Source: Thalia democratica (Eukaryota). From it: a stretch of 64,000 nt of DNA. This document shows positions 21,726 through 64,000 of this stretch, in pieces. The notes under the pieces were generated by a model that saw only the letters and a list, made by a program, of their open reading frames with translations, did not search any database and was not told where the DNA came from. The first letter of the stretch is position 1. Every line of letters starts with the position of its first letter. Both the position numbers and the translations under genes were made by a program. Location of the stretch: the NCBI GenBank assembly GCA_965202585.1, contig OZ241829.1, forward strand, positions 8,680,001-8,744,000. The letters run 5' to 3'.

Positions 21726-22093
21726 ATGAACGGAATGATCCAAGACCCGCTGAAGATGAAGCCCACATTCCCACCCCAAGCCCCCACGACAGGCTACCCC
21801 CCGAACCTCATCGGGCCCCACGGAAACTGGTCGCCTGGCAACCACCTCCCCGATAAATTCCCCCCGACCTTCTACCCCTCTCCCCTCCACCCACTGCAAC
21901 TCCCATACTTCCCCCCTTTCAACATGATGAAGAACCCGATGATGACGTCATTCTACCACGGGGACAAGATGACGTCACCTTGTCATGACGACGACGGGAA
22001 GCCGGACGACCCGAAGGTGGAGCTGGAAAACAGCGACCTCTGGCGGAAGTTCCACGACATCGGCACCGAGATGGTTATCACCAAGACGGGCAG
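21726..22093 (+). CDS. Tbx2/3: Tbx2/3 coding exon 1 (Pro-rich N-terminus plus start of T-box)
   Basis: ORF 21726+; ends GGC AG|GTTAGC (phase 2), the conserved TGR|R T-box intron position. Confidence 0.92.
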
Positions 22094-41128: not shown

Positions 41129-44100
41129 AAATATTGAGCTAGCTTCTACCATAAAAACATTCAAAAAAGAACAATTATAGACAATACTGTCATGTGTACA
41201 TAATACTTTTACAATAAGCAAATAGTCGAATAAAGCGTTATAGAAAAATGAGCTTTATCAAATTAAGTCGAAATTATAGTCCTTAAATTGATAGTTTTTT
41301 AGTGTAATATATTAAAAATTTTTTAACTTTAAGGGAACATCTATAGAGATAACAAGTATAGTTGTATATAATTATTCTGAATTTCACTACACTTCAAAAA
41401 CTGTAGCCTTGCTTATTGTAAAATAAATACTGAGTACAATGCTTGAAGAATTAAAGTACACACCATAGGTTTAAAAAGACATTAAGTTAGAAGACTCAAA
41501 AACTGTAATAATGTTATTTTAATGACTTAATAGTTTCTAGCGTACTAATATAAGTTATAAACAAGATTATATATAAAAAAATAGTTAAACCTTTATTTAG
41601 TAAAAATATTTTAAATTTACAATTTATGATTTCTGAAAAAACTGTGAGTAAATGTAAGCACATGACTTTTTTTTGGTAATTTATTGTTGACATGCAAATA
41701 AATTTAAATAAAAATGATACATATTAGTATCATTAAAAATATTTTAAAATTTAAACACTTTGTTGTTACAGTCATTTAATACTGCAGATATTAACTAACT
41801 TTTTAAATTCTAAGTTGTACATTCAAAACAATCATGGGATAATTCGATCAGCAAAATAATTATATCTCAAAAAAAATTAGTACAAAGCCGTTCAATTTTC
41901 AGTACAAACCTACAAAAAACAAATCCTACAAAGTTTAACTAAGTTGGCTCAAAGTGTCATCGTAATTATCGGTAACTGAAGATTACAAAAAAACTGCTGA
42001 AAAGCTGTAATTTTGTTTCTGACGTCACTCTGGTCGTTGCTTTGTGACGTCGTTTAATAAGATATCCGATTTCACGGGTTAGCGCCAAATTTACCAGCAG
42101 TGAATATTGTGCGTAATTTTTTACCTTGTATATTTCTAATTGAGAACTTTGTGACAAGGTCGTTTGCATGAAGTCATAATGAATTGATGAGGAGAAATGT
42201 AAAAAATTGATTAAGAAGGCGAACTTGTTTAAAAGCTTACTCACCGAGCGGTACTGAATATTTAATGGTAATTTGCAAATAATTTGTTTATTTTTTAAGC
42301 TCGTTTTATCTTGTTTTTAATCGACATAATGGTTGTGTCATTTTTAACAATAAATTTACTACTTGCTTCGTGTTTTTTTTTAACAATTTGTAACGAGTGA
42401 GTTAGTTTGAAAATATTATGTCCTTTAAAAACCTTATTTCTTGTAGTAATATGAAAAAATATGTAATTTTGTTTTTTAGATTATGCCGTATAATAAATGT
42501 GTTTTATTTTAAGAAAAATTTAACTTTAAATTAATTTAGGGAAAAACTAAAAAAAAAACTGTTTGCCTAAACAGTTGTATATATAACAATTAATTTTGAC
42601 CTGTCTACAATTTAATAAAAATTGAGACCTTTAATAAATAAGATGGTATATAATTACCTGATTGTCTAATAGAACTTGTATAAAAAAATTTTTTTTTTAG
42701 ATCTACTTAAACAAAAACATAAATAAAACTTTACATATATTCGTATGACATTTAACAGAGAGTCTAGTAAGTCTACCAAAAACAATTAAATAATAAACTA
42801 TGGTTATTTTTTGAATTTAAACAAGTTTTAAAAAAATTTTATCAATCAGAACACTACTATCAGTTTTAAAAAACTTTGATACTTAAATGTTGATTTATAT
42901 ATTTTAAATAGTTTTATACTACTTTTTTAAAGTATCAAATCCTACTATATAGACAAGTAGCTTCTTAAAAAATAACCTTTGATATTCTCTTAAACATAAG
43001 ATAAAGGAAGAATTTTTAGTTTACTATATTTAAATTTAAAACAAAAAGTATTTTAAGGAGTTGAGTAAAGGTACTAAAGTTGTAAGTTATTAATTGTATT
43101 TTAGTTTAAAATTGAGCAAAAAAAATTCAGTCTGGAAACAAAACTTAAAATGTTGTACAAGCTGAAAAATTATTCATATTTTACTAAAAATACTTTTCAA
43201 AAGTTTTAAACAAATATTTAGTTAAAATTCGCTGTTTATATAAGTTTCACTTTAAATCGATATATACTGTTTTTTATTTACTATTTATTAAAAAAAATAT
43301 TAGTTGTCTTTTGTTGTCTACTCCAACATTTAAGAAACTTCTTTTAACTTGAATTTTATTTCTCTACTGTCAATCAATGGTAAAAATTAGTAGCATACAA
43401 TGTTTATCTAAACGACGGTTGTGCTTAAAAAAATATTAATAAATTTTATTATGAATCTAATGATTTCTAATATATTTTATTTAAAGCTAAACAATAATAG
43501 TTCATATTTATACTAACGAAAGATATGAAAAAATATCTTAAAAATGTGATGTTTGAGAATATTCTAAAATTCTAATTTTTACAGCTCACTATTTTGTTCT
43601 TTAATTCTAAATAAATTAAAAAAAACTAAAAAGTTTTTACACATATTTTAGAATTTAGTGTTACATTCCTAAACTACTTAAAAAACTGTATGCTTCTCGT
43701 TAATGTAGTGCTAGCAAAAGAAACTGCTAAGCTGATTAAGTATGTGTTTAGTGTACTTAAAAAACTCTTAAATATTGTTTTATTTAAAAAATAAGTTAGA
43801 CTGGACGCTACCACGGAAACGAAGTTTCCACAATATGACGTCACATTTTAGTTACGTCATCACAGTTCAGATGTAATACTTATTGTAATATGGACTTGTC
43901 CAGTTAGATATTTTCCGAAGCAAGCCTTTCTAATCTGGTCGAGCAAATAAATGTTGCTGATAAACTTTTGAATGTCGTCCCCTTGTTTATAATTTGAAAG
44001 TTTAACTTTATTTCTTAAGTAATAAAAGCTAATAAGAAAATTTTTATGCAATACATTGAACTTGGTATTGATTGAAATGTTTAAAAATACTAGTAGATAA

Positions 44101-44553: not shown

Positions 44554-46933
44554 AATACTAGCAGTGCTCGCAACTTCGACCCGAGAGTCATTTTGGAGTG
44601 CTGCGATAGAATACAAAAAGAATTTAAAGCCTGGGAAAGTCAAAACCAATAGTTAGTGTGTTTGTTAAAAATACTTGAAGTATCCAAATATTTAATTAGT
44701 AAACTACAATTTATATGTCAGTTAATTACATCACATACTTAGAAGATTATAAAAAATACAAAACTCATTCGTTTTTGAAATTTTTGTATAAATTTACTTT
44801 TTATTTTCATACAAAAAATGGTTATTAGTTTTTTTTTAAATACTTAAAAAAGACTTATTTAATTTCATTATAAACTGTACACTTTATCAGAATTTTTATT
44901 TCCAGTTTCAGAACTGAGCACGAGAAAGCCTCAATGGAAAGAAACGAAGCCCAAAAGCTTTGTAACATGGTAATTTATATATTTTTATATATTACCATAT
45001 CTGTGTTTTTGAATACATGCAGTTTTATCATAAGTACTATAGTTAAATACTGATTGTAACATAATTCAACCTTATTTGATATTTCCGGTATAAAATTATT
45101 ATTAGTTTTGTTCTAAACTATTTCTAAATAGTGTTGTTTACTCTTAGGCTCACCAACAAGCTAGTAGTCTTTGCGACGAGGTTACAAAAAAAGTAAGTTT
45201 TTTTTTGTCTTAGGAAAATTATTAAACTTTTAGATTTAGATTGAAAGTAAGTTTTTATAAGGCAAGTTTTCAACTATTTTATGGTTTATTAAGTCACTTT
45301 AGTTAAATATTCTTTTTGTAAGTACTGTATTTATTTTGAAAGTTTTTTAAAATAATAATTCCAAAGGCTGAATTAGCAAACGTATGTAGTTGAACTTGAA
45401 AAAATTTTCCTTGGATTTTAAGAGTCAATAACATTTTAATTTTCTGATTTTATCTTAAACATTTAATTATAATTTTTTTTAGTCTAAACAACCCCAAAGT
45501 TTAAAAAAAATATTTTATTTAAAAAAAATGCTATAATGTTTGTTTATTATGTATATTTTTTAACAGGGTCAAACATTAGAGTCATTATATGCACTAATAC
45601 AATCAATTTCACCTCATCTACCAGACGATGTTAGTTATATGCAATGATTGAAAACATAAAAAAAAATAAATTGATTTTATAAGATATATCCTACGTATAT
45701 AAAAAATATTCTTTAGTTCTTGTTATAAGTGTAAAAAGTACTGTTTTATAGCATTTTTTAAATATAATTTAATTTTAGCTATTTTTTACAAGATATTGGA
45801 TAATTTCTGTAATGTTTAGGATTTTAACTATAATTTTTTTGTAAATTTATTAGGTTTAAATGATTTAAATGAATTTAGTTGTTTAACTTCCAATAATACT
45901 GTAATTAAATTATTTTAATTATGATAATGCAAAAAAAAAACACATAATAAAAAATAAATCAGTAGTGTTAATTAAAAATAAATAAGTTTGATTAACGAAT
46001 AAATAGTTTAAAATATATCAAAAATTACTGTTTTATACGTTTCTAGTATGTGTACGGCTCATCAAGTTTAGACAATTCAGATTCTTTAGAAATGCTTTAA
46101 GTACCACAGCTCATAAAGTTTCGAATATTTAAAAGAAAATATGTACACAGAATTACTAAAATACCTTTAATCCCTTATTTTTGCAAATTTTATAAGATAT
46201 GGCTGAATTAAGTTTTACATTTTAGTAATTTTCTGTTGTTTTCAAAGTTCTTTTCAAGTTAATACAATTTTTGTACGATCATAATTTTAAAAGTTAGATC
46301 TAAAAACATATTTTTATTATCATCAAATACATATTACCTTTTAAACATTAACTTAAGAATTTGAGTTGTCGATTTCAAATTATCTTGTAACCATGTGTTA
46401 TTTATTTAACTTTCAAGACTTAATCTTAACCAAAATTAATTCAAAAGTTTTAATAATCAATAAGTAAAATCTTAGACTATATATTATCGCTTTAATACAA
46501 AAGTTATTAGAAATGCAGCTTTATACAAGTATCATAATTAAATAAAGTAAAAAATCAAGTCGAATAATTAAATAAATAAGCTTGTTTTTCAGTTGACGTG
46601 AACATTTTTTAACAGAACTAAAAACATGTAACTAGTTTTTTTATTTTCACAAACACTAACTATCAATTCTTATTTTAGGAGTAAAAATGTATTTTCTAAC
46701 TAAAGTATTTGGAATAAAGCAGACTCAGTTTACTTCTTAAAATTTTAAAGATATTTTAAAGTTTATTTAAAAAAAATAAAAATAAATAAAATAACAAACG
46801 TATGTCGTGGAAGTTGTAGAAAGTTTTTGTTTTAGTTTTACGTAATTTTTTGATTTTTACAAAATTACCAATAATAACTCAACAGCAAAAGCAGAGAGCA
46901 AGCGATGCATTGGAACAAGCTAGACAGTTTGTT
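44554..46933 (+). CDS. Five micro-exons encoding the diverged Groucho/TLE N-terminal Q domain
   Basis: Exons of 98 (phase 0-2), 64 (2-0), 45 (0-0), 63 (0-0) and 48 nt (0-0), each with a pyrimidine-rich AG acceptor and a GTTAGT/GTAATT/GTAAGT donor. The 64/45/63-nt series matches vertebrate TLE exons 3-5 as recalled. Confidence 0.82.
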
Positions 46934-49900
46934 GTTAGTCATTCACTTTGTTGATTAAATTACAAAAAATTAACAATTGAAATAGTTTTAATAAAATTAA
47001 AATTAAATAAATCTTAATGAATGAAATTGCAAATTGTTTAGATATTTTTAAGAATTTTAAGTTAATAAAAGTTTGTTAAACAGTTTGTTTACTTTATAAA
47101 AAAGATTATTTCCTGACACTTTTAGGGTCAACTAACCGGTTTTAACCCCCAATATCAAGGAGTTCCAACACCAGCGGCAGTTTTTACAGTCCAGCAACAG
47201 TACTTCCATTCACTCATGGCACATAACTTTCAAATGAACTTGGCAAATAACCCACAAGTTAGCTTGGCACAAAACCAACAAATGAACATGGGTCAAAACT
47301 CACAAATGAACATGTCACAAAACCCACAAATGAACATGGGTCAAAACCCACAAATGAACATGTCACAAAACCCACAAATGAACATGGGTCAAAACCCACA
47401 AATGAACATGGCACAAAACCCACAAATGAACATGGGTCAAAACCCACAAGTTAGCTTGGCACAAAACCCACAAATGAACATGGGTCAAAACCCACAAACT
47501 AACATGGCACAAAACCCACAAATGAACATGGGTCAAAAACAACAAACTAACATGGGTCAAAACCCACAAATGAACATGGCACAAAACCCACAAATGAACA
47601 TGGGTCAAAACCCACAAGTTAGCTTGGCACAAAACCCACAAATGAACATGGGTCAAAACCCACAAACTAACATGGCACAAAACCCACAAATGAACATGGG
47701 TCAAAAACAACAAACTAACATGGGTCAAAACCCACAAATGAACATGGCACAAAACACACAAATAAATCGGGCACAAAATGCGTATACACAAAACGTGAAC
47801 CATGATCATCACTTTACACTAAATCACCCATATGTAGACCAGCAATTCGCAAGTCAACCAGGTCAGTTGTCTTCTGTAGTAAATAGACAATTAATTTGTA
47901 TTTACTTTTTTACTTTGTACTATATTGAAGATTTAAGTATTGTTTGTTACTTAGGTCTAAAAACTTGTTTTATTATCAACTTAAACCAGATTTAAAGATC
48001 TCATTTTACAATATGATGTTTTTATTCAAAATCTTTTCAACCGTTATTTTTTATTTAGTCACATATAAACGAAATCATTAAAAGATCTTAAGTCATATTT
48101 ATTCTACTTTATTTAGTAGATTTATTTCATGTAAGATTCATTTCATGTAAGTAACATTAAACGTTTATGAAGAAATTTAAAAAAAATAATTTGCAATTTG
48201 TTTTGGTTTGTACGGTTTTTGAAAACTTTTTATAGTTTTTTTGCAAAGCTTCAAACTTGAACAAAAATCATGGTATTAGTTTTTATATCTAGAAAGTTGC
48301 TTTAATTAAAAATATATATGTTATTTACCTTTTAATTTAAGTAGCTGTATTGTTCTAATAATTGAAAAAACAGGTCCAAGTAGATCATTGGCTGAAACTG
48401 TGAGAAAACCTGAAAACAAGCGGGTTAGTAAACAAACTTGTAACTTTGTTTATTTTGTTATTAATTCTAATAGTTAAAAATAAAAACTTAACTTTTAATT
48501 CAATCACAAACTTTATTTCAAACGAAACTGTGTAGAACTTGCACAAAATTAAGATTTTTTTTACCTAGTTACATAAAAGTAGTTTTTATTAAAAAATTAT
48601 TTACTTAAACGTATTATTAACAGCAGTTTGAAGTTTTATAAAAAATTATTACTTAACTACAAAAGATATGATTTTCACAGAAAAGAGCAAACGAAGTAAA
48701 TACCAAAGAAGCCGGACCACAGCAAGCAACAAATAGCAAAAGTTATAGCAGTGCGCGTTTAAGCAGAAACATCAATACTGCACATTCAAGCAATGGCAGA
48801 CAAAATGTATATCCTAATAGTTATGATAACTCTGTACGTTCTAGTTACAATCAGAATGCTGAAAACTTCAGTAACGACAACCTAACTGCACTCACTAGTA
48901 CTGATTGGTATCCGACATACAGTAATGTACACAGTGTAACTGGAAATGAAGTAAACCATACCATGCATGATGTGGAAAATTCAATGAAAAGAAAAATCGA
49001 TGAAAGACAAGTTTGTAATTTGTCATAGTGGTTTATAAGAAAAAAAAACTTGTTGACATAAAAAAAATATATAAACAGTCTTTAATAATTCTATAACAAA
49101 ATGTAAACATAAAGTCACAATATTATATATATATATTTTTCAATTACATTGTGCGATATTCAAAACAAACTTTTAAGTTTAATAAATCAATTATCTTCGA
49201 CTACAAGTTCTAATTTATTTACTGTCAACAAATAAATTTCAAATCTACAAAGTTCGAATGATTGTAAAATAAGTATTTGGATTATACATATATACTGTTT
49301 CATTGATTTTTTTATATTATACCTGTTTGACAGTTTAAGGCTACAAAACAACAGTATGGTATTGAAGACTGTAGTGAAAATAAAAATGTTGTAAAGAATT
49401 ACACTTCTGATTCTGTCTCTAACAGCGGAAAGTCAAACAAGTATATATTTTATTTCTTTAAACTGCTTAAGTAGAACTAAAAAAATTAAGCCTTGTTTTG
49501 AATAAAGTTTTTGCAAGTTTTGCTTTTACTTAAAATTTTAATAATAATCCTTTAGCACTAAGTAGTTTTAAAATTAATTAATATTACTAATCAGACGTTT
49601 TAAATGTTATTATTTACTTAATCAACTTACAAATCTGTTAAAATAAAGTAAATAATATAAGGATATTATTTAATTGTGTATTTTAATATTTCATTTTTTA
49701 ACTTATTTTTGGTCAAATAAACAACAAAAAACGAACAGTAAAAACAGCAGTGTTCAAAGACAAAACGAAAAGCCAAAACAAACCGTTGGTCGAAAAGATG
49801 AGATTTCTTCAAAAATAGGTTAGCATTTTATTATAGTTTATCTAAACATTAGAAACATTTTAATGTACTTACTAATTTAAAAAAGTCCTACATAATAAAA

Positions 49901-50355
49901 TTACATTTATAGAGGATAAAATTATTTTGTTTAATTCTATAAAGTGTAATAAGAGTTTTTAAAGCGACACTATAAAAAAGAAATAAGTTAATTCTTGTTG
50001 TTACACTGGTTTTAGCAAACAAGACTGTTAAATGGTTTATGATATACATCTCTTTTTATTAACAGGTTTAAGAAACCTTATTTTGAAGAAACAAAGACTC
50101 AACAAAAGTCAGCAAGAGAATCAGGAAGGAAAATTCAGCGCTATGACGTCACTAGTAACAAAACCACCTATTGAGTCAAAACTGCCGCATCCTCCTGTTT
50201 TGACGTCACATACCCACAAGCTACAAGAAATGACTGCAGAAATCGACCAACCAATGGTTATGACGTCACAACAGAGGAGCAACGATGACGCACGTCCTGA
50301 TTCAATGCAGCCGGAGCAGTACGTTGACAATGATTCAGATCGAGAAGAACATTAA
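44554..50355 (+). CDS. Groucho/TLE Q-domain protein lacking WD40 (AES/TLE5-like architecture) with Q/N/M octapeptide repeats; first coding exon not located ('gene A')
   Basis: Eleven GT-AG exons splice into one 1911-nt open frame: 44554-44651, 44906-44969, 45148-45192, 45567-45629, 46886-46933, 47126-47861, 48374-48423, 48681-49010, 49334-49440, 49739-49818, 50066-50355 (TAA). N-terminus: ...VILECCDRIQKEFKAWESQNQY|FRTEHEKASMERNEAQKLCNM|AHQQASSLCDEVTKK|GQTLESLYALIQSISPHLPDD|QKQRASDALEQARQFV. This aligns without gaps to the Groucho/TLE Q domain as I recall it (...ERIKEEFNFLQAQYHS|IKLECEKLSNEKTEMQRHYVM|YYEMSYGLNVEMHKQ|TEIAKRLNTLINQLLPFLQAD|HQQQVLQAVERAKQV). Confidence 0.85.
47243..47770 (+). repeat. 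Coding 24-bp minisatellite, about 22 copies, [A/G/S]QNPQMNM, with a 168-bp higher-order repeat
   Basis: Unit approx. GGT CAA AAC CCA CAA ATG AAC ATG. Seven-unit blocks 47387-47554 and 47555-47722 encode identical peptides. Lies inside the 736-nt exon of gene A (ORF 47216). Confidence 0.97.
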
Positions 50356-51765
50356 GATAACAATAACTAAATTACCGTGAGTAAATTCAGAAATTTTTAA
50401 ATTAACTTGTTTAGTTTAACATCTGATTATTAAACTAAAAAAATAAAGTTTAGAAATAATAGTTTTAGTAAAGTTTGTTGTGTCCTTTTGAAAATAAGTT
50501 AAATTTTTAGTTTTCTAAATTTGTTTTTCTTATAAAGTCTGTTGTAGATAGAGTTTTATTAAACATTTCTAGGGGCAACAAATGGATGGATGTCTAGTAT
50601 CTATCCTTTATCACCAACAAACTTTTTAGATTATGAGAGAATCCTGAACAACATTCACAGCCCAAAAGCGTCTTATGATTCTCTTTACTATTTTTTGATC
50701 CATTTTTTGATTACTATTACTTCTTTTTGTTTATAATTTATAAGTAAACACAAACGGAACTTTAAATTAAAGAAGAAACTACTAGTTTTTTTTTCTATTT
50801 GTAAACACATAGTAGGGCATTTAAAAAATAAATTAGTTTATCAATGATGATTAAAGGGTCTTTTTAAACTTTAGGTTCGAGTCTTTAAATATATTTTTGA
50901 ATTTAAATTTTTTTTAATCGTTGTTAATAAACTATAGTTTAGTGGGTATAAATAGTTTCTTATTGTGTTGTGATTTTTAAATACAAAACAAAATTATAAC
51001 AAGTACAAAATCCTTAAAAGCTCAATTGTGTTTAGTTTGTTAAAAGAATAATATATTTTATCATTATCAAGAATTTGGTTGATTGCTCGACTATACAAGT
51101 TCGGAAAGTTTAACTTTTTTTATAACTTTTAATGGTTCACAACTTAAAAAGTAATTTATAATTTTATTTTAAATAAGAAACGCGTATTAAGGTCAAATTT
51201 TTAACTAGTTCTAAATAGGCGTTTTTACTTTTTTCAAAAGAATAATGTTTTTTGAGTTGTGGCCTTTGAAACATTTTTTATTTGAATTGTCGAAACCTGA
51301 ACAGTCTGAATTTAAACTAATATGTAACTAATTTGGCTTTACTTATTTGCGCCAGTTTTTTTTTTGTGTTTAATTCGGTTGTATGTAAAAATTTAATTCA
51401 TCAAAAATTTCAACACAAGTTTTACATCAAATATTATTTATCAAAAAATAAGTATAGAAAATAGTTTTTATAAGTTTTAATTTTAATTGGAGAATAGAAT
51501 ATCGAACCTAAAACATTATGATTCTTAAAAATATTTTTATTCAACTAAACCAATTATCAATATAAGCTAAGAAGAGAGTTTAGGCAATCTAAGTAATTTA
51601 TAATACAAATACTGTACGAACGAAAAAAAGGAAAATACGAAATATACTTTTACAAGAAGCTTAACTATAATTAAAAAAAAAAAGATTTAACTAAAGTCTT
51701 TTGTTTGTTCTCAATTTCTTATTCGGTTTCTTTTCTTGCTACTCACTTTCATGTAGCCTCTAGTA

Positions 51766-54700
51766 CAGGGGTCGGCAGGCAGTTGGTGGTCGCGGGCCAA
51801 ATTTCAAGTTTACAAAGTCTTCGCGGGCCGCAGTTTTAGTTTTAGTGACATTTGAATAATCTTTTTGTTTTAGTTTTAGTCACACTAGAGAAAATGACTT
51901 TTTAAAGTCATTTTAAATGACTTTTAGCTATACATTGAATGACTATTTAAATTAAATAAAATTAAATTTGAATAAAATTTACATTGACTAATATACTTAT
52001 GTCTTAATAAACTATGTACGTTCATGAGAACTTAATAAGTTAATTTTAATACTTTGTAATTTTACATACAATTTAACTCTCTATAAAAACAAAACTTGAA
52101 AGACAATTTATTAGTTACTTTTATATATTTGTTATATTATCAACCCCTTTTTTCATATATTTCTAAGAATATTAACTTCAAAAAAAAAGTTTTTGCGTGT
52201 TAAATAGTTTACATTCAATAAAATATTTAGTAATTAGATAATTTAATAAAATTAATACCTGTTTGTATTATAGAAAGCTAGAACAAATTCTTTAACATAA
52301 TTAATTTTCGAATACTTAAATAAAATATCTTATTAGTAACTAGTTTTTTACATGGTTGTCACTTAAAAAGCAAAAATGTCTGAGTAGTATCAAACCAGCC
52401 TAAGTTCATTAAAAGTTTAAAAAGCTAGTAAATCGTTGTATATCAAGCTTAAGTACCTAGTAAGAATATCATCATCATTAAAAAGTACATAAAGTGTAAA
52501 AAAACAAGAAAAAACTACAATTAGTAAATTACACTACAGTCATAAAAACTTCTGGGAATTCTAAGATTTCTTTAAAGTGTTTGAAATAAAAATGTTTCAC
52601 ACACATCTGAGTATTCAAGCTTTTAAAATAGCCTGTTTGTGTAGCAACCCAGTTAAAACAAAGATCACAACATAAAGAAATAACGAAACTTATTAACAGT
52701 AAACAAATTACATGCCAAAAAAATATAAGTCAGCTGGAATGGACAATTAACTTCCTTAAACGTTTTTAAAAAACAAAACTTTATTGAATTATAGCGAAGA
52801 GAAAAACTAATTTTTTATTAAGCATTACAGCAATTCTTTATCTGCAAATAGAATAAAGCATTTAAAAATATTAGTTGTAAAATAAAAGACGAGCAACAAA
52901 AATAAAAATAAAACGTTAGTTAGGAGTTATTGCGAGAAACGATAGAAAAACAAATCACCAAAGTCAGTTCCAACAAAGCACATGAATATCTTCAGTAACT
53001 ACAGAATTATCAGAAAAAAGTTGTTAAGGCAAGTTATAAAGTAGCAAAATCTATTGTTAAAAATGAGATAACGTTTATAATTGAAAACTTTTTTAAAGAA
53101 TTTTTGTTGGCAGTAATGAAAAACTTTTGTTTATTTCTTCAATGACAAAAAAAAGTCCTAACTAGGAAATGCATTAAGGTTAAATGCATTAAAGTCGCAT
53201 AAATCAAATTATGACTTTAATCAATATGTTAAAATGAGAGCACTGATAAAAAAACTATTGCTCATCTGAGAATTTTTATTAGAGATGTTTTTTTAACTTT
53301 GACACTTTAGTATAATTTCTTGGTTTAGTTCAAACACGAAGCACAACAATCGGTAAAATTTTACAAGTAAAGGTGCAATGCACCAAAAGTTTTTAGAAGT
53401 ACAATTCCTTCTTTTATTTTTAGAATAAAGTTTAATTAAAGTTTAAAAAGTGTTTTATAAAGTATATCAATATTAAAAAACACTGTTAAGCTACTTTATT
53501 ATATTTTTTGTTAAAGAATGTTTATTTGCTAATTTTTTTGTGTCAAATCGTAATTTCACTACTTTACATGAAAAATTGTTTGAAACTCCAGGCTTTTTCA
53601 AAAATTCTCAAATTCAAGTCTTTTTCTAAAATTTTAAGCATAAATTTTCAAGTTTAAAGTTTTTTCGAGATTCATGTTTTTTGGTAACACTGATTGTTAA
53701 CACTTAAATGTACACAATAATATAAATAATATTCTGAATTATATCAGCTGCAAGTCTTAAAGTTTAACATACATTATAACTGAAACTAACACTTTGGGTT
53801 GAGCAAAACTTACATCAAAAAAGCCAGCCTGAGTTAACAAAAACATTCCTGATATTTTTGTATACAAAAAACAATTCTAGCCAAAAACTTATAAAATGAC
53901 TTAGTTGGCCTGAGATTTGAAGTCTTCAAATAGTGATAGTCTGAGTGTGTGTCAATGTTTATAAACCACCCCTAGTCTAGTTTATATTAAATAGGTAGCT
54001 CCAAAAAACAGCAAATGTGTGTATTGATATGCAAAGCATAAAAGTTAACTTAGTTTGAAAAAATAAATGTTTGAAAAATGAAAATGTATACCTAACAAAA
54101 ACTATATTAGTTTATGTCATATATACTGTTTTAAATATGTCTGTACAAAATTAGATATTACATGTAGAAAAAACAAACTTAGAAAATTATGTATAAACTA
54201 AACTTAAACTAACTTAAGTATTTTATAAATAGTGGTTTAAAATATGAGCATCTTTTTAAGTTGGAGTGCATATAAATTAATTTAAGTGCAAAGAAAACTT
54301 CTAAAAAATTAAAATGTGTCAAAACAAAACTTAAATAAACCTTTTTTTTTATTACTTTGTTATTTCAAATGTTTTTACACTAAAACATTACATTTACAAA
54401 TAAAAAATACATAAAAGAAATTTAGGTATAAAAAATATTGAAAAGAATATCTAAGCTATAAAGAAATGACACTTTAGTTAATTACTGTGCATTACTTTTG
54501 TACAAAATGGAAAACATTTGCATTTAGTTTATTTAATAAATAGGTATAACATAACTAACTTATAAAATTCAAGCACTCTTTAAACCCTTTTTTCAGATAA
54601 CTACTTGCTGTTGTAAGAAGAAGTTATTATAAAACTCAAAAAAATGTCCTGTTAGAATGCTAATCTGTCTTATTCACATGTTTAAACTAAAGTAGTAACT

Positions 54701-54927
54701 TCTTCTAATTATTTTTAAATGTTATACAGAGACTTAAAACCAAACTAATCAAATTAAATCGAATTACCGAAAAAAATTTTACTTGAAATATATTTTTGAT
54801 CAGCGGGCCACTTTTACATGCTCGCGGGCAACAAAATTTTCTTTCGCGGGTCGCATTCCATTCAAAAAAATAACGTGCTCGCGGGCCGCAGATTTACCCT
54901 TCGCGGGCCGCAGTTTGCCGACCCCTG
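51766..54927 (+). mobile_element. Decayed hAT-superfamily (Charlie-like) DNA transposon, non-autonomous
   Basis: TIRs CAGGGGTCGGCA at 51766 and TGCCGACCCCTG ending at 54927. Perfect 8-bp TSD CTCTAGTA (51758-51765 and 54928-54935). Subterminal TCGCGGGCC repeats at both ends. Internal fragment 53023-53130 reads VKASYKVAKSIVKNEITFIIENFFKEFLLAVMKNFC, resembling the ASYKVA..IAK..KPF..GE.IKE motif of Charlie/GTF2IRD2-type transposases; the surrounding frames are broken. Confidence 0.93.
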
Positions 54928-55507
54928 CTCTAGTATAAAGATAAAAACATTTGGCCCGCAGTTTAAATCTGGCCCGAATCCAGAAGTTTCTGGCCCGTAA
55001 AACATTTCTATTTTAATGACATTTGTGTACAACGAATAAAATTGATCATATATGCAAATAAGCTCTGTATTTTCTTTTTAACTATTTAGTTTACCACTTT
55101 ATTACAGTCATGTTTTTAAAGATTTTTTTTTCTAAACTACCTTATGAAAAAAAAAAATATCTTTTTCTAGCTGACGAGTATATAATTTCTAAGACGGTAA
55201 AAAGAAAATTTAAGATTCGTGTGAAGAGTACTAGTTGTAACAAAAATTATAATTTCTGTATAAAACATATCTTACATACTTAATTACAAGTATAGTGTAT
55301 ACTGTATAGAAAACTACAACACTTTAGAAAGTTCATATTTTAAAAAATATATTTTATACTCAAAGGCTGCACTAAAGAACATAAACAAACTAAATTAAAG
55401 TTTGTAAACTTAAAACTTATGCAAGAAAATGAAATTGTTCTAGAAATTTCTAAAAGGTAAAAACTATTTAAAAGCATTATAAAAGTCAATGTTAATGCAT
55501 TTGTTCA

Positions 55508-55812
55508 CGTTAGTGTTGTTGAAATTCTTCTCACAACACAAGCAGCTTGCTGGAAGTTACCGGCGGACTTTCTATTGTAGCCCTTATAAATATTAAAGAT
55601 TTTTTTCATTCTTATTACACACTAAAAAGAAAATGAAACGCTTTTATAAAACCAATTTATAATTTTTTTAAATTCAAAGTTATAATATTGTAACTGTTAA
55701 AACTACAAAACTTTTTTTTTGCATTTAAAATATTAACAAAACATACAAAATCCAATTTAAAACTGTAAAAGATTACTAACATCAAGTTGTTGGCGTCTTA
55801 ATGATCTTCTCG
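55508..55812 (-). pseudogene. Remnant third copy of the 3' end (stop region and 3' UTR) of the Groucho-derived gene family
   Basis: Near-identical direct repeat of 57753-58046, including CGA GAA GAT CAT TAA (versus CGA GAA GAA CAT TAA) on the minus strand. Similarity ends just upstream of the stop. Confidence 0.85.
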
Positions 55813-57235
55813 TCTTAATCTATTTTGCTGTTGAAAGCTGATTTCTTTTAGAAAGTAATGCCATCAACTATTGTTAATAAAAGTGTTTAAAGAATTATAA
55901 GGTTTTTTGCGCAGTTTGATATTTAAATATTTAATTCTTACCAATTAAACCTAAAATTTATACGGTGAACATATACTTATAAGATTCAAAAAATTTTATG
56001 TGTTTTTTTTTTGTTACAACCAAAACATGAGCATGTATAAAAAATAGAAATTTTTATTGTTATTACTTAAGTATACTTGAACTTCATAAACCTTTTTTCA
56101 ACGAAAAAACGAATTTTATGTTATTTGAAAATCAATAATGAAAACTATAAAGAAAATTTAAAACTGTACTTTAAACCAATAAAGATTAGACTGGTTTTGT
56201 AAAAATTCTTTTTGAGTTTAACAAAGAATAGATCATTATTTTGTCCATTTAATTCAAAATATATGGTACAAATTGATAAAAGTTTTTGAATATTTATAAA
56301 CAAATTTTATAAAACGGAAAACAAGTATAATTTATTCACTTTTTATTTACCAAGTTTCAAATAATTCAAGTAGCTAAAAGCAAAACTAAACTGACAATTT
56401 TAAAGATAAATCTATTTAATTTTTTATAACTAAATATTATTTGATTAAAAAAGGGTTCAAGTACTTTTTTCTATTAGACTATTATTTTAAAACTATATTT
56501 AAAAAAAAAGAGTTCTACTTGAAAATAACAATTTTAGAAAAGGTACAAATAATACTTTTATAACCTAAGTTTTTTTAATCTTAATTAATTAATTCAAGTC
56601 GGTGAGAATTGCAGTTTAAAGTAATAAATTAATTTAGAATGTTTTTTCTTATAAAACCTTTTAAAACTACTAAAATGCAAACAATCTTAAACCAATATCA
56701 AAACTATAAATAGCATATTTTTTAAACTTAGCTTTATGCACGAAAAACCTTCATGATAACCATGTCGTAACACTTAATTAATTTTTAAACTAAAAACTTA
56801 TGTAAATCATTTTGATACGCTTTAGATTTACTAAAGGGAATATGGAATGTTACATTTCGTATACGAAACGGTCGCCTTAATCTTTTTGCAGATTGTATTT
56901 AGCTCTAATTTAACTTGTCGAGCGCTACCGTCCAGAACTTTTTCTAAAACTATAAATATATATATATATATATATACATACATAACATTTTTTGTTTAAA
57001 TTATAAATCTATTACATTTAATCAAAACAGCAACCTAACCGCTAAAATGAAATAAAAAATAATTTAACTAGTTTATTACTAGAACAATATTTTTTTCTAA
57101 AAAACGAACTTAATATTAAGACTTCATTTCAGTTAAACAACAACTATTAACATGGACGATATAAGTTTTTTTACTCGCTACTACTTGTAAAAGGTACTAC
57201 TACTTACCCTAGATTATACTTTTTAGTCAACTAGT

Positions 57236-57404
57236 TCAATACAAGTCAGAAACATTACTACGCATCATGCACTTGTTGAGGTCTTCAAACCAAGTATTTG
57301 TACAAGTTTTGCAAAAATAATGGCTGACATGAGAGTCCAGACGGACCATTTTAATACTAAATATTAATGTTTTTAATGCAAACCACATATTTCTTTCCTA
57401 CCAT
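57236..57404 (-). pseudogene. Degenerate RING-finger pseudogene fragment, paralogue of 63198-63662
   Basis: The minus strand reads VGKKYVVCIKNINI(frameshift/TAG)...MVRLDSHVSHYFCKTCTNTWFEDLNKCMMR versus intact VGEQCVVCLDDLKIGTRMVRLDCHVTHCLCKTCTDAWFKDHSKCPLC. Three Zn ligands are lost (C>Y, C>S, C>R). Confidence 0.85.
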
Positions 57405-58031
57405 ATTGTAATAGAATATACATTATTTAACTATAACTCAGTTTAAGTAAAAATAAAAAGAGCTTGTTCCAAATAAAATTTTTTTCATATAATAATTTTG
57501 TTTCAAACTACTAACTATGTAATTAAACTAATTTATTTATAATAATTAGGAAGTATATTTTGCTATTATGTTATTTTAGCTTTAATAATTCAATTTTTTT
57601 TATTCAAACTACACACATTTAATAAAACTAACAATTTTTTTTAATATTCATAAACAAGTTTTCTAATTTTTCAAAATTGTTTATCAAGCAAAGTTAGCAA
57701 AACATAATAAAAAATGTTATACTTTAATCTGAAAAAGAAGTAAAGTCAGGCTCGTTAGTCTTGTTAAAATTCGTCTCACAACACAAGCAGCTTGCTGGAA
57801 GTTACCGGTGGACTTTCTATTGTGGCCCTTAAAAATATTAAAGAGATTTTATTACCAAACTAAAAAGAAAATGAAACGCTTTTATAAAACCAATTTATAA
57901 TTTTTATAAATTCAAAGTTATAATATTGTAACTGTTAAAACTACAAAACTTTTTTTTTTGCATTTAAAATATTAACAAAACATACAAAATGCAATTTAAA
58001 ACTAGATTACTAACATCAAGTTGTTGGCGTC

Positions 58032-61000
58032 TTAATGTTCTTCTCGTTCCGAATCATTTTCAACGTGTTGCTCGGGCTGAGTTGATTCATCGCTGCTCCT
58101 CTGCTGTGACGCCATGCTGCCCTGTTGCAGTTGTGACGTCATAACCATCGGTTGGGGGATCTTTGCAGTCATTTCTTGTATCTTGTGGACATGTGACGTC
58201 GAATTGGAAGGAAGCGGCAGTTTTGATGTCGTAGCTTGTGACGTCATAGCGCTGAGTTCTCCTACCAGATTCTTAGTTTGTCGAACTCTAGCTTGTTTGT
58301 CAAAATTGGCTCTTTTCAAGGTTTCCTTTTTCCGACCTGATTATAAAAATCGATCATAAAACATTTCAGAATCTTATTTAATCTAACAAAAATAACAAAA
58401 AATCAAATTACGTGCTTTTAAACAATTGCCTAAAAACATTTAATAAACTCTATAGAGTAAAGTTTTAATTTTAAGTACGTAGCTTTTTATGATACAGAAC
58501 TTTTTTAAATTGGTAGTTACACTTTTTAACTTCAGTGTACTTACAAACTGAGTTTACTTATTTTAATTATTTTATATAGCAGTTTTTAAAATTTACAAAA
58601 ACTTTATTAAGTACTAACCCTTATTTGAAAAAAGTTTAGTTTTTTGACCATCGGATTGTTCTTGATTTTCATTTAGTTGCTGTACACTGCTGTTTGTAGT
58701 AGTCGTTTTTTTGCTTAAGTAAAGAACTCAATAAAATAAATTTATAAATTCTAACTGACTTTAACCCAATTTTTAGTTGATCAAGTTAATAATAACATCT
58801 CAAACTGTCTGGGTAATAATATATTACATTTTTTAACTAACTAGTACTAAAGAGTTTTAATTATTATCTTTAGTAACAGCAAAGTGTGCAAAAAATATTA
58901 TAGTACAACGCTTAAACTTTTTTCAATATTTAATGCAAATTAGTTTTGAAACCTGTTTGAATTTTCACTGCTAGAAGCAGCATTAAACCCGAAGCTCTCC
59001 TTAACAACTATTTCGTTTTCACTGCAGTTTTCAATACTATGTTGTTGCACGGTAGCTTGAAACTGTCATTAAGCATATAAAATAAACAAATACAACAAAA
59101 CAACTTATTTGTATAACATACACATGTTTTGTACATTTAAAAATTTGTATGTACTAAAAACTAATTTAACTTCGTACATTAAGATAAAACTTGAATTAAT
59201 AACTTAAAAAGAGTATAAAACGTCAATTTCTTATACTTCTAATTACTGAATTTATTCTTTAAGAATATATTTTTACAAACGAAGTATCGGTAAACAATTC
59301 TTATTCAAATAGAATTCTAAATGAATAAGAATTATTTAAGTACTGACGATGTCTTTGACCAAATCTTAGTTTGTAAAATAAATTCTTGAAAGAATAAATT
59401 TATTTTTTTTCTCCAGTAGTTGAGATCTCTTTATTTGTTTTCTTAAAACTAAAACATATAATAGTTCTTATTACATTAAAGTTTAAAAAAATCAATATTA
59501 TTTCTTATTTTCAGTTGACTTTTAAATTTTTTGGTGGTACAAATAACCTTGTTTTTAAATTCTAGGACAAGTTTAACATGACTAGTTTAGGCCATCTAAA
59601 AAAGAATCATTACTTGCAACTCGCAAAGTGAAAAAAAATATTTAGAGTGAACATTCAAATCTATATACTAAATATAATCAAGACAGTTAGTTTGAATATT
59701 TGGAAGCTATTACTTATTTAACATTTAGATTTTTTTCAAAAAGATTATTCAATGTAAAACGAAAAAATAAAGACTTCAAATTGTGATTGGATATTAAACG
59801 TATTTTTATGGCATTGTGTAGAGTTAATTAGAAAAAATTATCTTAACTAGTATAAATTTTAGTGCTTAAAATTAATTAAATTACCAACTTGGTTTTCATT
59901 CATTTTTAGCTTCTTTGAATTTTCCACATCATGCATGGTATGATCGATCCCAGTTCCAGTCACATTTTCATGTTGTGTCGGATATCTGCTAGTACTATAG
60001 TTTGCAGTGAGGTTGTCGTTACTGACGTTTTCAGCATTCTGGTTGTAACTAGAATGTACTAAGTTACTGTTACTACTAGCATGAGCAGTGCTGGTATTTG
60101 TGCTGAAATGCGCACTCTTAACATTTCGATTTGTTGCTTGCTCTGGTCGAGGTGCTTTAGACTTTACTTCATTCAATAGTGCACTATTCTGTAAAAATTA
60201 TCCACTTTTCAGGTAGTTTGAATAATGGTTTAGAATCAGGTAGTTTGTAAGTACACTGAATAACGTCAAGCTTTGATAACAACCTAATTAGATTTACCCT
60301 GTTGGAATTAAAAAAAACAATAATAAATTTTTGAAAAAACAACGCTTCCATATGTCAAACTTCTACATTGTTTATTTAAATTAGTTTTAAACCAACTTTA
60401 AAACTAAATCTAAATCAAAACTTCATTTTTTTCAATTTGAAATATTATAATTAAAAATATAATAAACTCACTTATAATCTGATAGACTAACCCGCTTGAT
60501 TTTAGATTTTCTTGGGGCTTTAGCGAATAAACTGCTCGGACCTGTTAATTGAATAGTAAGATAATGCAGACAAAAATTAAAAACAAAAAACACTTAAAAT
60601 ATATTGTTTAAGGCTAACAACGTTCTATATTTACAAATTGTTACTGTAAAGTCTTATTTTTAAGTTTTAAACTTTGTACAAAAACTTAAAAAAGTTTTTT
60701 AAAAACCGTGGAAGCAAACTATTAAAAAAAAATTGAGTTTTGTTTTATTCAAATTTTTGTTGACCTGAACTTATGACTTAGTTTTCATAAAATAATAAAT
60801 AAAAAGTTAGAAAAAAAGTGCTAAAAATAAAAAATACATATATTCATTAAAAATAATAGATAAAAATATCATTAAGCCTTTTAAAAAAATTAAAAACCTG
60901 TATGCTTTTCACTAGTTCTTTAAAGCTAGTATAGGTTAATAATAAAGCAAGTTTTGAGACAATACGAAATTTTTTAATAAAGTTAAAACTACCTAAAATA

Positions 61001-61197
61001 ATACAAAGTATAGTTATCTATAAATTATACAAAACAGTTGACCTGATTGATTTGTGACTTGCTGATCTACGTACGGGTAATTTGGTGGAATGTGTTGACC
61101 ATGATTTGGATCTTGTGCATACGCATTTGTTTTTGATGTCGAGGGTCGATTATTTGTACTTGGTTGAAGATGAAATATGTTACTTTGGAGATATATA
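58032..61197 (-). CDS. Inverted paralogue of the 3' half of gene A ('gene B'); 5' end unresolved
   Basis: Exons on -: about 61197-61043, 60541-60492, 60188-59889, 59062-58953, 58713-58619, 58336-58032. Phases (1,0,0,2,1) are the same as in gene A and the peptides are homologous: NAYAQDPNHGQHIPPNYPYVDQQ vs NAYTQNVNHDHHFTLNHPYVDQQ; SSYNQNAEN.SNDNLTA; HTMHDVENS; MVMTSQ; V.NDS.REEH*. Includes ORF-track entries 59859-60176 and 58032-58319. Confidence 0.8.
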
Positions 61198-63197
61198 CTT
61201 TACTAAATAGGGCTGATCTATGATTTTTTAGCAGAACTGTCTAAATTCCAATTATAAAAATGTCAAATACTTTATCGTTTTTTGTTTATTTCAATTTTAA
61301 ATTTACTAGAAAGTGTATGTTTTTAAATGGTAGATTGTTTTTCTAATGATAAGATCATAGCCACAACGGTGACTATGTTTTAAATGATTTGCTTATGTAA
61401 CCAATAAAAGTTAAATTTACCTAATTTTCTTATTATAAGCTAACAAGCATAGTAGAAAATTAAAATTTTGTTGAACACTTTTTGATACTCATAACAATTT
61501 AAGTTATTAACAAATACTGTACGTTAGTTAAGATAAAATTATGTTCTCTGATAGTTAATGTTTTTTTTTATGTTTATATTAAATGCCAGTTATTTTAAAG
61601 TTATTTTCAAAATGTTACAAAAAAAAACCGAATTTTCAGTCCATCCGCCTTGTACTGCAGCTACGTCTGAACAAAAATTAAATTAACTCATATCTTAATT
61701 TAAAAACAAAATTTTACTTTACCTAAATTCAAGAAAGTATGAGCATTTATAGTAAACGTAATAACGTTTTAACTCATTAAGAAAGCACGTTTTATAACCT
61801 ACTTAAGTAAGCAAGTATCTTTAAGCAGGGTTGCTGAAGTTCCAAAAACAAAATTTCTGAATACTTAATAAATTTTTGTTTGATTCAAGCAAAAACTTGA
61901 TTTGACTATATAAATGACGATTTTGTAGCAACTATGCTGCTATACGGAAAAAAATTAATTTGAATTTAAAATTAGAGTTAACAGTAAAACCATTTAGTAT
62001 AAAGCTATAATGAATTAATCAATACCTAAAGTGTTAAGTACTTTGTTACTAAAGAACCTATTAATTTTTTGAATTAATTAATTAATTCAAAGAACCTAAT
62101 TAATTTGAAATGGTTTTGATTCATGATCACGATGTAAAATAAAATGAATAAAATTCAACTAAGGTCATAATGTTAGATCATAATAACTATAACTGAGTGA
62201 AATTGATGTTCTTTTTAAAACTTTATAGGCTAGGTGTCAGATCGGCAGTTTCCAGCATGTAGGCTATGATCCAACAATTAAATATATTTTCACTTAAATA
62301 TAATTACGTCACGAATGGAAAACAAAACGAGTAGAAAAATCACAGGACTTAAATAGATATTGGGTATTCAAGTACAAACTGAAATTTTATTCATGATTGT
62401 TTAGATTAGAACAATGCTTATGTACAGGTTCCTACCAAAAGAACCAGTGTTTTAGTAAAATAGCACAGTTAAAGTATTTTGAGTAAAAAAGAATTTGATA
62501 GTTTTTAATAAAACAAATTCTAAAATTTAGTGATCTTCTATTTTTGTAATAGCATTAGTCTATTAACTAAAACATTATCAGTACTATTATAGTTGAAAGT
62601 AAAAACTTTAATTATTATTTTGGTAGTTTAAAATTAAATTTTTGTCAGTAAAATTTTTTACAAGTTCTTGTAACTCTAATGATTATTGCATAATTTAAGT
62701 TTCCAATTGTTAAAGATCGCTTGAAATTATTGATCTATTGGACCTATAATCCTATTTATTAAGTGAATCGTAATGAAAAAGAGTTCTTAAAAATATAAAT
62801 TAGGTAGATCACTAGTTTTTTAGATTATTGTAAAAATGGATGAGCTTGGAAGTTCTTTACATATAAATATACGAATTGCTACATACCGCAAGGTTTTTAA
62901 ACTATGTTTATATTTTCAAACAAAAAAAAGTTTAAAACATTTAATAAGAAAAGTAGTTAACTGTACCTTTGTGTAAATAAAAGTATTCATCGTGCTACAT
63001 GTCAAATTTTTTTGTATGTTAAAATAAGTAAGTTATTCATATGTAATAATAAAGTTAATGTTTCATATACTTTATATCTTTTATATTAACTATAACATTT
63101 TACTTAACAAAACAAAACGTATTCACAATTCACAGTTTATTAATTGTTGCAAGAAAAGCACTGTCACCAATATTCTATATTACTGTTAAACCGGTTT

Positions 63198-63662
63198 CTA
63201 GTTGAAAACATGATTGCATAAAGGACATTTGCTGTGATCTTTAAACCAAGCGTCTGTACATGTTTTGCACAAACAATGGGTGACATGACAGTCCAGACGA
63301 ACCATTCTCGTGCCAATTTTCAGGTCATCAAGGCAAACCACGCATTGCTCGCCCACCAACGATTCGTCTGCAGCGAAGTGTTCAAATCTACCAATTCTTT
63401 CGGGTGTCAGTCCACTAACAGGTTGTTGCGTTCTCCTTCTCTGCTGCGCATTGCGTCGTACATGTTCTATATCTTGTTGCGTTCTCTCTTGCTCCATCTG
63501 CCGCCTAATACGTTGTAAATGTTGTATATTGCGTTGCCTTTCCTCTCTCACCTGCGTGAATCGTCGTAGAAGTGCATCAGCTCGTTCGAGTAGATCTACG
63601 TGTTCATCAACTTGCTGCTGATCAGCATCTTCGTCGACATGATCAGGATTGAGTTGGTCCAT
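63198..63662 (-). CDS. Intronless RING-finger protein (putative E3 ubiquitin ligase), 154 aa
   Basis: C-terminal C-x2-C-x14-C-x3-H-x2-C-x2-C-x3-W-x6-C-P-x-C motif (CVVC...CHVTHCLCKTC..AWF...KCPLC), preceded by an acidic N-terminus and a Q/R/E-rich coiled-coil-like segment. ATG to TAG is uninterrupted. Confidence 0.92.
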   Translation of the reverse strand: MDQLNPDHVDEDADQQQVDEHVDLLERADALLRRFTQVREERQRNIQHLQRIRRQMEQERTQQDIEHVRRNAQQRRRTQQPVSGLTPERIGRFEHFAADESLVGEQCVVCLDDLKIGTRMVRLDCHVTHCLCKTCTDAWFKDHSKCPLCNHVFN

Positions 63663-64000
63663 TTTATTTTACTCTTAGATTAATAAGATACTTTTTATTT
63701 TTAACCTAATAAAAGTTTTTACTTCAGACGTAAATTTTATATAATATAATATTCTTTTGATAATTTACCCTAAATTTTAATGTATCAATATAACAACTCA
63801 AGTATATTTAACAAATTGATACAAAATAAATAAAGATCAAGCAAATTCAATTTTATATTCAAAAAAAAAATTATATGTACAAATTAAACATTAAACACTG
63901 AATATATAATAAATATGTCTTAGATTTAAATAAAAATGTCACACTCAAATACCTTATTTTAAATATTAGTGGTATTTGTAATTTTAAAAGATAAAACCAT

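Follow-up and report, generated by a model that had tools for sequence, protein, structure and literature searches.

Locus A, at positions 44554-50355 on the + strand of a 64,000-nucleotide (nt) stretch of Thalia democratica DNA (assembly GCA_965202585.1, contig OZ241829.1, positions 8,680,001 to 8,744,000; this whole stretch is called the window), is probably a real protein-coding gene of the Groucho/TLE family, specific to its lineage, in which only the N-terminal Q domain is kept and there is no WD40 domain. The coding reading is based on five points: (i) 636 codons are open over 11 exons with AG/GT borders, though random stops are expected about every 12 codons; (ii) the Pfam TLE_N profile is matched over five exons without net gap; (iii) the stop and the C-terminus are kept in a paralogue of the window (paralogue B) and in two marine metagenome proteins (L001 and L002), and L001 keeps exons 8-11 in order; (iv) the tails of A and B have a ratio of nonsynonymous to synonymous divergence (dN/dS) of 0.53, their indels are multiples of 3, and the exonic variants listed include more synonymous ones than expected under neutrality; (v) exons 5 and 6 are phase-compatible and the frame of exon 6 opens at the acceptor.

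Exon structure and Q domain of locus A

The locus was rebuilt from the letters of the window. Its 11 exons are spliced in frame into 1911 nt, i.e., 636 codons with the C-terminus REEH* and a TAA at 50353-50355. All internal exon boundaries are of the ag/gt type. The exon lengths are, in order, 98, 64, 45, 63, 48, 736, 50, 330, 107, 80 and 290 nt and the phases are 0, 2, 0, 0, 0, 0, 1, 0, 0, 2 and 1, respectively. Introns span 178-1256 nt. The G+C content of the window is 28.5%, which gives the stop frequency of a chance frame mentioned above. An earlier note, written from the letters alone, had proposed this 11-exon model, and its coordinates, lengths, phases, number of codons and terminal peptide are all recovered by the rebuild. 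The exons are the following.

44554-44651, + strand: Q-domain exon 1 (98 nt, phase 0 in, 2 out) with the DRIQKEF block; not a first exon (acceptor, no ATG); the Pfam alignment runs from residue 13
44906-44969, + strand: Q-domain micro-exon 2 (64 nt, phase 2-0), with a synonymous polymorphism at 44921
45148-45192, + strand: Q-domain micro-exon 3 (45 nt, phase 0-0), with a run of seven A (A7) at its end
45567-45629, + strand: Q-domain micro-exon 4 (63 nt, phase 0-0), with a synonymous polymorphism at 45594
46886-46933, + strand: Q-domain micro-exon 5 (48 nt, donor gttagt) with the ALEQARQ block; the TLE_N match ends here
47126-47861, + strand: exon 6 (736 nt), i.e., a 34-residue linker, the octapeptide array and a unique segment common with paralogue B
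48374-48423, + strand: tail exon 7 (50 nt); the basic cluster KRKR is formed together with exon 8
48681-49010, + strand: tail exon 8 (330 nt), S/N-rich, with a terminal KRKIDE; kept in paralogue B and L001
49334-49440, + strand: tail exon 9 (107 nt)
49739-49818, + strand: tail exon 10 (80 nt)
50066-50355, + strand: last exon (11, 290 nt), with the conserved stop REEH*; the palindrome TGACGTCA stands in frame at 50144, 50201 and 50261, where it codes for (M/L)TS

The micro-exons of 64, 45 and 63 nt have phases 2-0, 0-0 and 0-0, as previously described for the window. According to the earlier note, these would also be the sizes and phases of vertebrate TLE exons 3-5.

The first 106 spliced residues match Pfam PF03920 (TLE_N) with E=2.9e-11 and 44.2 bits, i.e., above the gathering score of 32 bits (curated cut-off of Pfam). 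Residues 13-104 are aligned on profile positions 5-96 of 118 (92 on 92), and all five micro-exons are in register without net gap. For the spliced N-terminus, no other Pfam family reaches an E value better than 0.03. The derivation of this peptide from Groucho/TLE, which had been proposed from the letters alone, is upheld by the profile. The five micro-exons encode a genuine, highly diverged Groucho/TLE Q domain and, with reference to this N-terminal domain, locus A belongs to the broad Groucho/TLE family. Exon 1 alone was uninformative as a query, either against PDB or against Atlas.

Exons 5 and 6 are both in phase 0 and are separated by 192 nt. The frame of exon 6 begins open exactly at its acceptor, 30 codons ahead of its first ATG.

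The model of locus A is 5'-incomplete. The acceptor of the exon at 44554 comes right after an in-frame TAG; since this exon has no ATG and the Pfam match starts inside it, an upstream exon is required. A weak candidate is the following.

42020-42267, + strand: tentative promoter and first exon, with an ATG at 42265-42267 followed by the donor gtaatt, which would join in phase 0

The candidate ATG is located about 220 nt 3' of a TGACGTCA palindrome (42020) and of a TGACGT half-site (42045), in a G+C-richer patch. Several short upstream open reading frames (ORFs) stand 5' of it.

Octapeptide array, tail and relatives of locus A

Exon 6 encodes about 23 octapeptide units with the consensus QNPQMNMG. 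At the DNA level, the array (47215-47778) has a period of 24 nt and 23.5 copies. It contains a higher-order duplication of 168 nt with 98% identity, which points to a recent expansion. The 190 residues of the array comprise 48% Q+N, 0% D+E and 2% K+R; by composition the array would count as prion-like, i.e., a long, uncharged, Q/N-rich segment of low complexity. AlphaFold2 (exon 6 alone, single sequence) gives a mean predicted local distance difference test (pLDDT) value of 45, with weak strands of eight-residue periodicity (pLDDT about 60). The array also matches T4 Gp5_trimer_C in Pfam (32 bits vs. a cut-off of 30.9), a match that is best taken as an artefact of the eight-residue periodicity. 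The repeat ORF has only one match, bacterial and of low complexity, in the word-index search.

The tail (exons 7-11) has roughly 300 residues. It is S/N-rich and of low complexity, without recognisable domain, and contains basic KRKR and KRK clusters resembling nuclear localisation signals; the KRK-type cluster is presumably reminiscent of the CcN nuclear localisation signal. No credible relative of the tail exons was found in Atlas, and exon 8 gave nothing in the word-index search.

A second, convergent copy of the tail is found in the window.

58032-61199, - strand: paralogue B, six exons at 61199-61043, 60541-60492, 60188-59889, 59062-58953, 58713-58619 and 58336-58032

Paralogue B has 338 open codons, the same phases as locus A and canonical splice sites, and it also ends with REEH*. 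The DNA similarity between A and B, introns included, relates only 47776-50368 to 61128-58019, i.e., it begins at the 3' edge of the array and extends a little beyond the stop. Paralogue B is without repeat and its first open stretch has no in-frame ATG. No Q-domain exon was found in it by tblastn with the model of A (E up to 10), the DNA similarity ending at 61128. The dN/dS ratio of the two tails reported above corresponds to a dS of 0.55, and every length difference is a multiple of 3. Judged from these values, the tail is under moderate purifying (coding) selection.

Two histories may be proposed for this pair: (i) paralogue B would be derived from an A-like gene by a duplication that left out the 5' part; (ii) the tail gene would have existed first, and locus A would have arisen when Groucho 5' exons were fused to it. 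The earlier note described the WD40 domain as swapped for a repeat and a disordered tail. The frame does continue into the Q/N array and a domainless tail, but a swap is only one of the possible histories. A fusion is equally possible, because the similarity of paralogue B starts at the 3' edge of the repeat and its tail is open without Q exons.

A profile of the last exon was compared with 1.84 billion representatives. Only two proteins were retrieved, both of them single-exon ORFs of marine metagenomes. L001 (4.4-kb Tara Oceans contig) has tail exons 8-11 in the same order, with 42-53% identity, and L002 has 71% identity across the last exon. The two contigs stop short of the Q-domain region. 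Two scans of metagenome contigs, for which the last exon and exon 8 were the queries, gave no match.

The tail exons of locus A have no match in the Pfam scan, hence no WD40. Downstream, no WD40-like coding is seen on the + strand of 50356-64000. The open segments of at least 40 codons in 50356-58034 look non-coding, and nine + strand open segments of this interval gave neither WD40 nor any other relevant match against Pfam. The DNA 3' of locus A is taken up by the convergent paralogue B and by a RING-H2 gene, both on the - strand. The lack of WD40 exons after locus A, as put forward earlier, thus holds for the tail and for the downstream open segments. The position of the stop is common to four homologues: REEH* in locus A and paralogue B, RQEH* in L002 and RNEN* in L001. 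Skipping of this stop into WD40 exons had been considered as a way by which the short model could fail; the conservation of the stop and of the C-terminal peptide in paralogue B, L001 and L002 argues that the C-terminus of locus A is a conserved stop and not a skipped one. The C-terminal WD40 propeller characteristic of full-length Groucho/TLE is thus lacking at locus A which, on sequence grounds, would be a short Groucho, i.e., Q domain present and WD40 absent.

The locus was also sought in four sequence runs (X1-X4). Runs X1 and X2 contain 88% of the sampled words, exons and introns alike, and their contigs match the introns exactly. Since they cover introns, these runs are DNA, and they appear to be DNA of the sequenced individual. 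Run X3, also DNA, comes from a relative that differs by about 10% and has many heterozygous variants in common with X1 and X2. Run X4 contains nothing of the locus. Being DNA, the runs could not show splice joints, and none is seen. Synonymous changes make up 11 of the 24 exonic variants listed and nonsynonymous ones 13, i.e., more synonymous ones than the neutral expectation. Both variants listed for Q exons 2 and 4 (44921 and 45594) are synonymous.

A structural difference is also seen in intron 2 (44979-45143), where one X1/X2 haplotype and X3 skip or replace 165 of the 178 nt (joint 44978 to 45144). Should the 165 nt be truly deleted, normal splicing of exon 2 to exon 3 would not be possible on that haplotype.

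The TGACGTCA palindrome and neighbouring features

The palindrome TGACGTCA, the usual extended form of which is (G/A)TGACGTCAC, has 18 sites in the window vs. 0.43 expected from base composition, i.e., an excess of about 40-fold. It is probably a dominant promoter-type motif of the genome. Besides the last-exon sites of A and B, it is found at 2988, 3017, 17174, 18042, 18120, 18145, 21943, 21970, 28228, 29505, 37531, 42020 and 43836. The sites are often paired (25-29 nt apart) and often lie in G+C-rich patches. Those at 21943 and 21970 are inside the first coding exon of Tbx2/3, and there too they are read as MTS.

The last exons of the four homologues (A, B, L001, L002) contain 14 (M/L)TS motifs, and every one of them is written (A/T)TG ACG TCA, i.e., TGACGTCA. 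These sites are the following.

Locus A: 50144, 50201 and 50261
Paralogue B: 58134 and 58239, plus a 7/8 site near 58194
L001: six sites in 2163-2322
L002: 141, 198 and 258

Elsewhere in the same coding sequences, ACG is used for 4 of 60 Thr codons and TCA for 28 of 108 Ser codons. The last-exon palindromes are kept although dS between the copies is 0.55 or more. The use of the rare ACG as part of TGACGTCA in all 14 motifs, despite this divergence, suggests a nucleotide-level constraint (exonic cis-regulatory or RNA element) in addition to the coding one. A role of the cluster as promoter of the downstream RING gene was rejected, since L003, a metagenome contig with this gene, is without such sites. 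L003 was also rejected as synteny for the 5' end of paralogue B, for it matches the RING gene only.

The RING-H2 (zf-RING_2) gene itself is intronless, codes for 154 amino acids and is located at 63198-63662 (- strand), upstream of paralogue B. A degenerate fragment of it is found downstream of paralogue B, at 57263-57376 (- strand). The family has 34 matches in marine metagenome contigs (up to 79% identity), and L003 contains two inverted copies.

Segment 55508-55813 is a direct duplicate of 306 nt, 91% identical, of 57753-58047, which comprises the 3' flank of paralogue B, its last five codons and the stop. It is thus a further sign of repeated local segmental duplication. An exact match of 16 nt, TTTCAAGCTACCGTGC, relates 18323-18338 (- strand) to 59047-59062 (- strand), i.e., the start of exon 9 of paralogue B. 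Its first partner lies upstream of Tbx2/3, in a non-coding block that is rich in G+C and in CpG. This match could be due to chance or to micro-conversion.

Two G+C-rich islands (0.55-0.57), at 51700-51860 and 54780-55020, lie between the paralogues and contain short direct repeats of the CGCGGGCCGCAG type. Neither of them matches Rfam, Pfam or a tRNA; more generally, scanning 39000-64000 for Rfam families and tRNAs gave no match.

Competing explanations and known short Grouchos

Several observations weigh against locus A being a functional gene that includes the Q exons: (i) paralogue B keeps an open tail without Q domain, thus the tail can stand alone; (ii) for a member of this family the TLE_N score is low, which means that the Q domain is highly diverged; (iii) the scan of 40.5-44.5 kb gave no convincing start-codon exon, the best candidate scoring poorly; (iv) RNA evidence was sought in runs X1-X4 and the locus is present only in DNA runs; (v) the exhaustive profile search gave no annotated or transcript-derived full-length protein in the collections searched; (vi) among the variants listed, two nonsynonymous ones lie in micro-exon 5, one of them at the E of ALEQARQ; (vii) the A7 run at the end of micro-exon 3 is one A short in the contig of X3 (deletion at 45186), so that this relative or haplotype would have a frameshifted Q domain.

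Some of these points are shared by a different explanation, of minor though appreciable probability. The Q micro-exons would be what is left, in decay, of the 5' part of a Groucho duplicate, the functional gene would be the repeat plus the tail (starting at ATG 47216 or further downstream), and the 636-codon model would be an in-silico chimera. Paralogue B is indeed tail-only, with DNA similarity from 47776/61128 onwards, and exon 6 has its own in-frame ATG; however, the frame of this exon is open for 30 codons 5' of that ATG, from the acceptor exactly. Likewise, exon 3 has its 1-nt deletion in X3 and no upstream ATG exon came out of the 40.5-44.5 kb scan, but at a divergence such as the 44-bit score indicates, neutral decay in 28.5% G+C should wreck frames and splice sites. 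On the contrary, the five exons are open, with exact lengths and phases, canonical AG/GT borders and no net gap on the profile. They also stand in the right order and on the right strand, 192 nt from exon 6, with which they are phase-compatible.

It is quite improbable that locus A as a whole is a gene copy that is silent or died recently, in an interval where local duplications recur. The 636 open codons of A and the 338 of B, the dN/dS of 0.53 reached at a dS of 0.55 with indels in multiples of 3, and the exon structure conserved with L001 argue against a dead copy, even if RNA evidence was not obtained (the runs carrying the locus being DNA), partial duplicates lie nearby (paralogue B, the 306-nt copy at 55508-55813 and the RING-H2 pseudo-fragment at 57263-57376) and exons and introns are similarly diverged from X3 (about 10%). 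Finally, a full-length Groucho, with WD40 exons beyond the window or reached by skipping the stop at 50353, is extremely improbable and close to refuted, for four homologues have the same stop position and C-terminal peptide, a convergent gene sits in the downstream DNA and no WD40 match is found downstream within the window, while no supporting point was found.

Assuming that locus A is the protein-coding short Groucho described above, its product would be a Q-domain (TLE_N) coiled coil fused to a Q/N octapeptide array and to an orphan tail with a conserved C-terminal exon. By analogy with AES/TLE5 and LSY-22, it would enter Q-domain oligomers, either with itself or with full-length Groucho, and might also bind TCF. 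Deprived of the WD40 surface, it would not be able to dock WRPW/eh1 repressors. The same analogy would make it either a titrating antagonist or a WD40-independent co-repressor subunit, to which the Q/N array may add self-association. A bolder scenario goes further and is clearly unlikely as a whole: an independent short Groucho, with its Q (tetramerisation) domain coupled to a rapidly expanding prion-like array, would trap TCF or full-length Groucho in condensates or other inactive assemblies, and its conserved last exon would at the same time be a cluster of DNA sites of the cAMP response element type (TGACGTCA) fixed at synonymous positions.

Short Grouchos without WD40 are a recognised class (AES, LSY-22), thus locus A is new as an architecture and not as a category. 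A tandem duplication of TLE2 is the reported origin of AES, and titration of full-length Groucho is the model proposed for it (PMC2997355). LSY-22 of C. elegans is an established, independent invertebrate short Groucho of the AES subfamily (10.1101/2022.01.10.475695); in the corresponding model it is a real co-repressor subunit, which acts with Groucho and TCF (10.1101/2022.01.10.475695; PMC10691804).

Locus A is like AES/TLE5/Grg5 in having a Groucho Q domain and no WD40, and the joining of Q oligomers would follow from membership of this class (PMC2997355). However, AES has about 197 amino acids (Q plus GP) whereas locus A has at least 636 and no recognisable GP; locus A has in addition the Q/N octapeptide array and the orphan tail, and the divergence of its Q domain is much greater (44 bits). 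It is unlikely to be an orthologue of vertebrate AES. Convergence with AES, as suggested in the earlier note, is plausible since AES is reported as TLE2-derived (PMC2997355), but it is less surprising now that LSY-22 is known (10.1101/2022.01.10.475695). LSY-22 is an invertebrate Q-domain protein without WD repeats, so the type also occurs outside vertebrates; it belongs to another lineage and has another C-terminal part. With full-length Groucho/TLE (Q-GP-CcN-SP-WD40), locus A has the TLE_N domain in common, but it has neither WD40 nor detectable GP/SP similarity (the GP, CcN and SP regions having no models in Pfam), and its C-terminus is a conserved unrelated exon.

On present data, locus A is a well-supported gene prediction and not a demonstrated regulator. 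If expressed, it would be the third independent origin of a Groucho without WD40, after vertebrate AES and nematode LSY-22, and with a different architecture, i.e., Q domain, Q/N repeat and orphan tail. If true, this would support the idea that cutting Groucho down to its oligomerisation domain is a recurrent way of tuning Groucho/TCF repression, and it would provide a natural case in which to see if a prion-like array alters the working of such a modulator.

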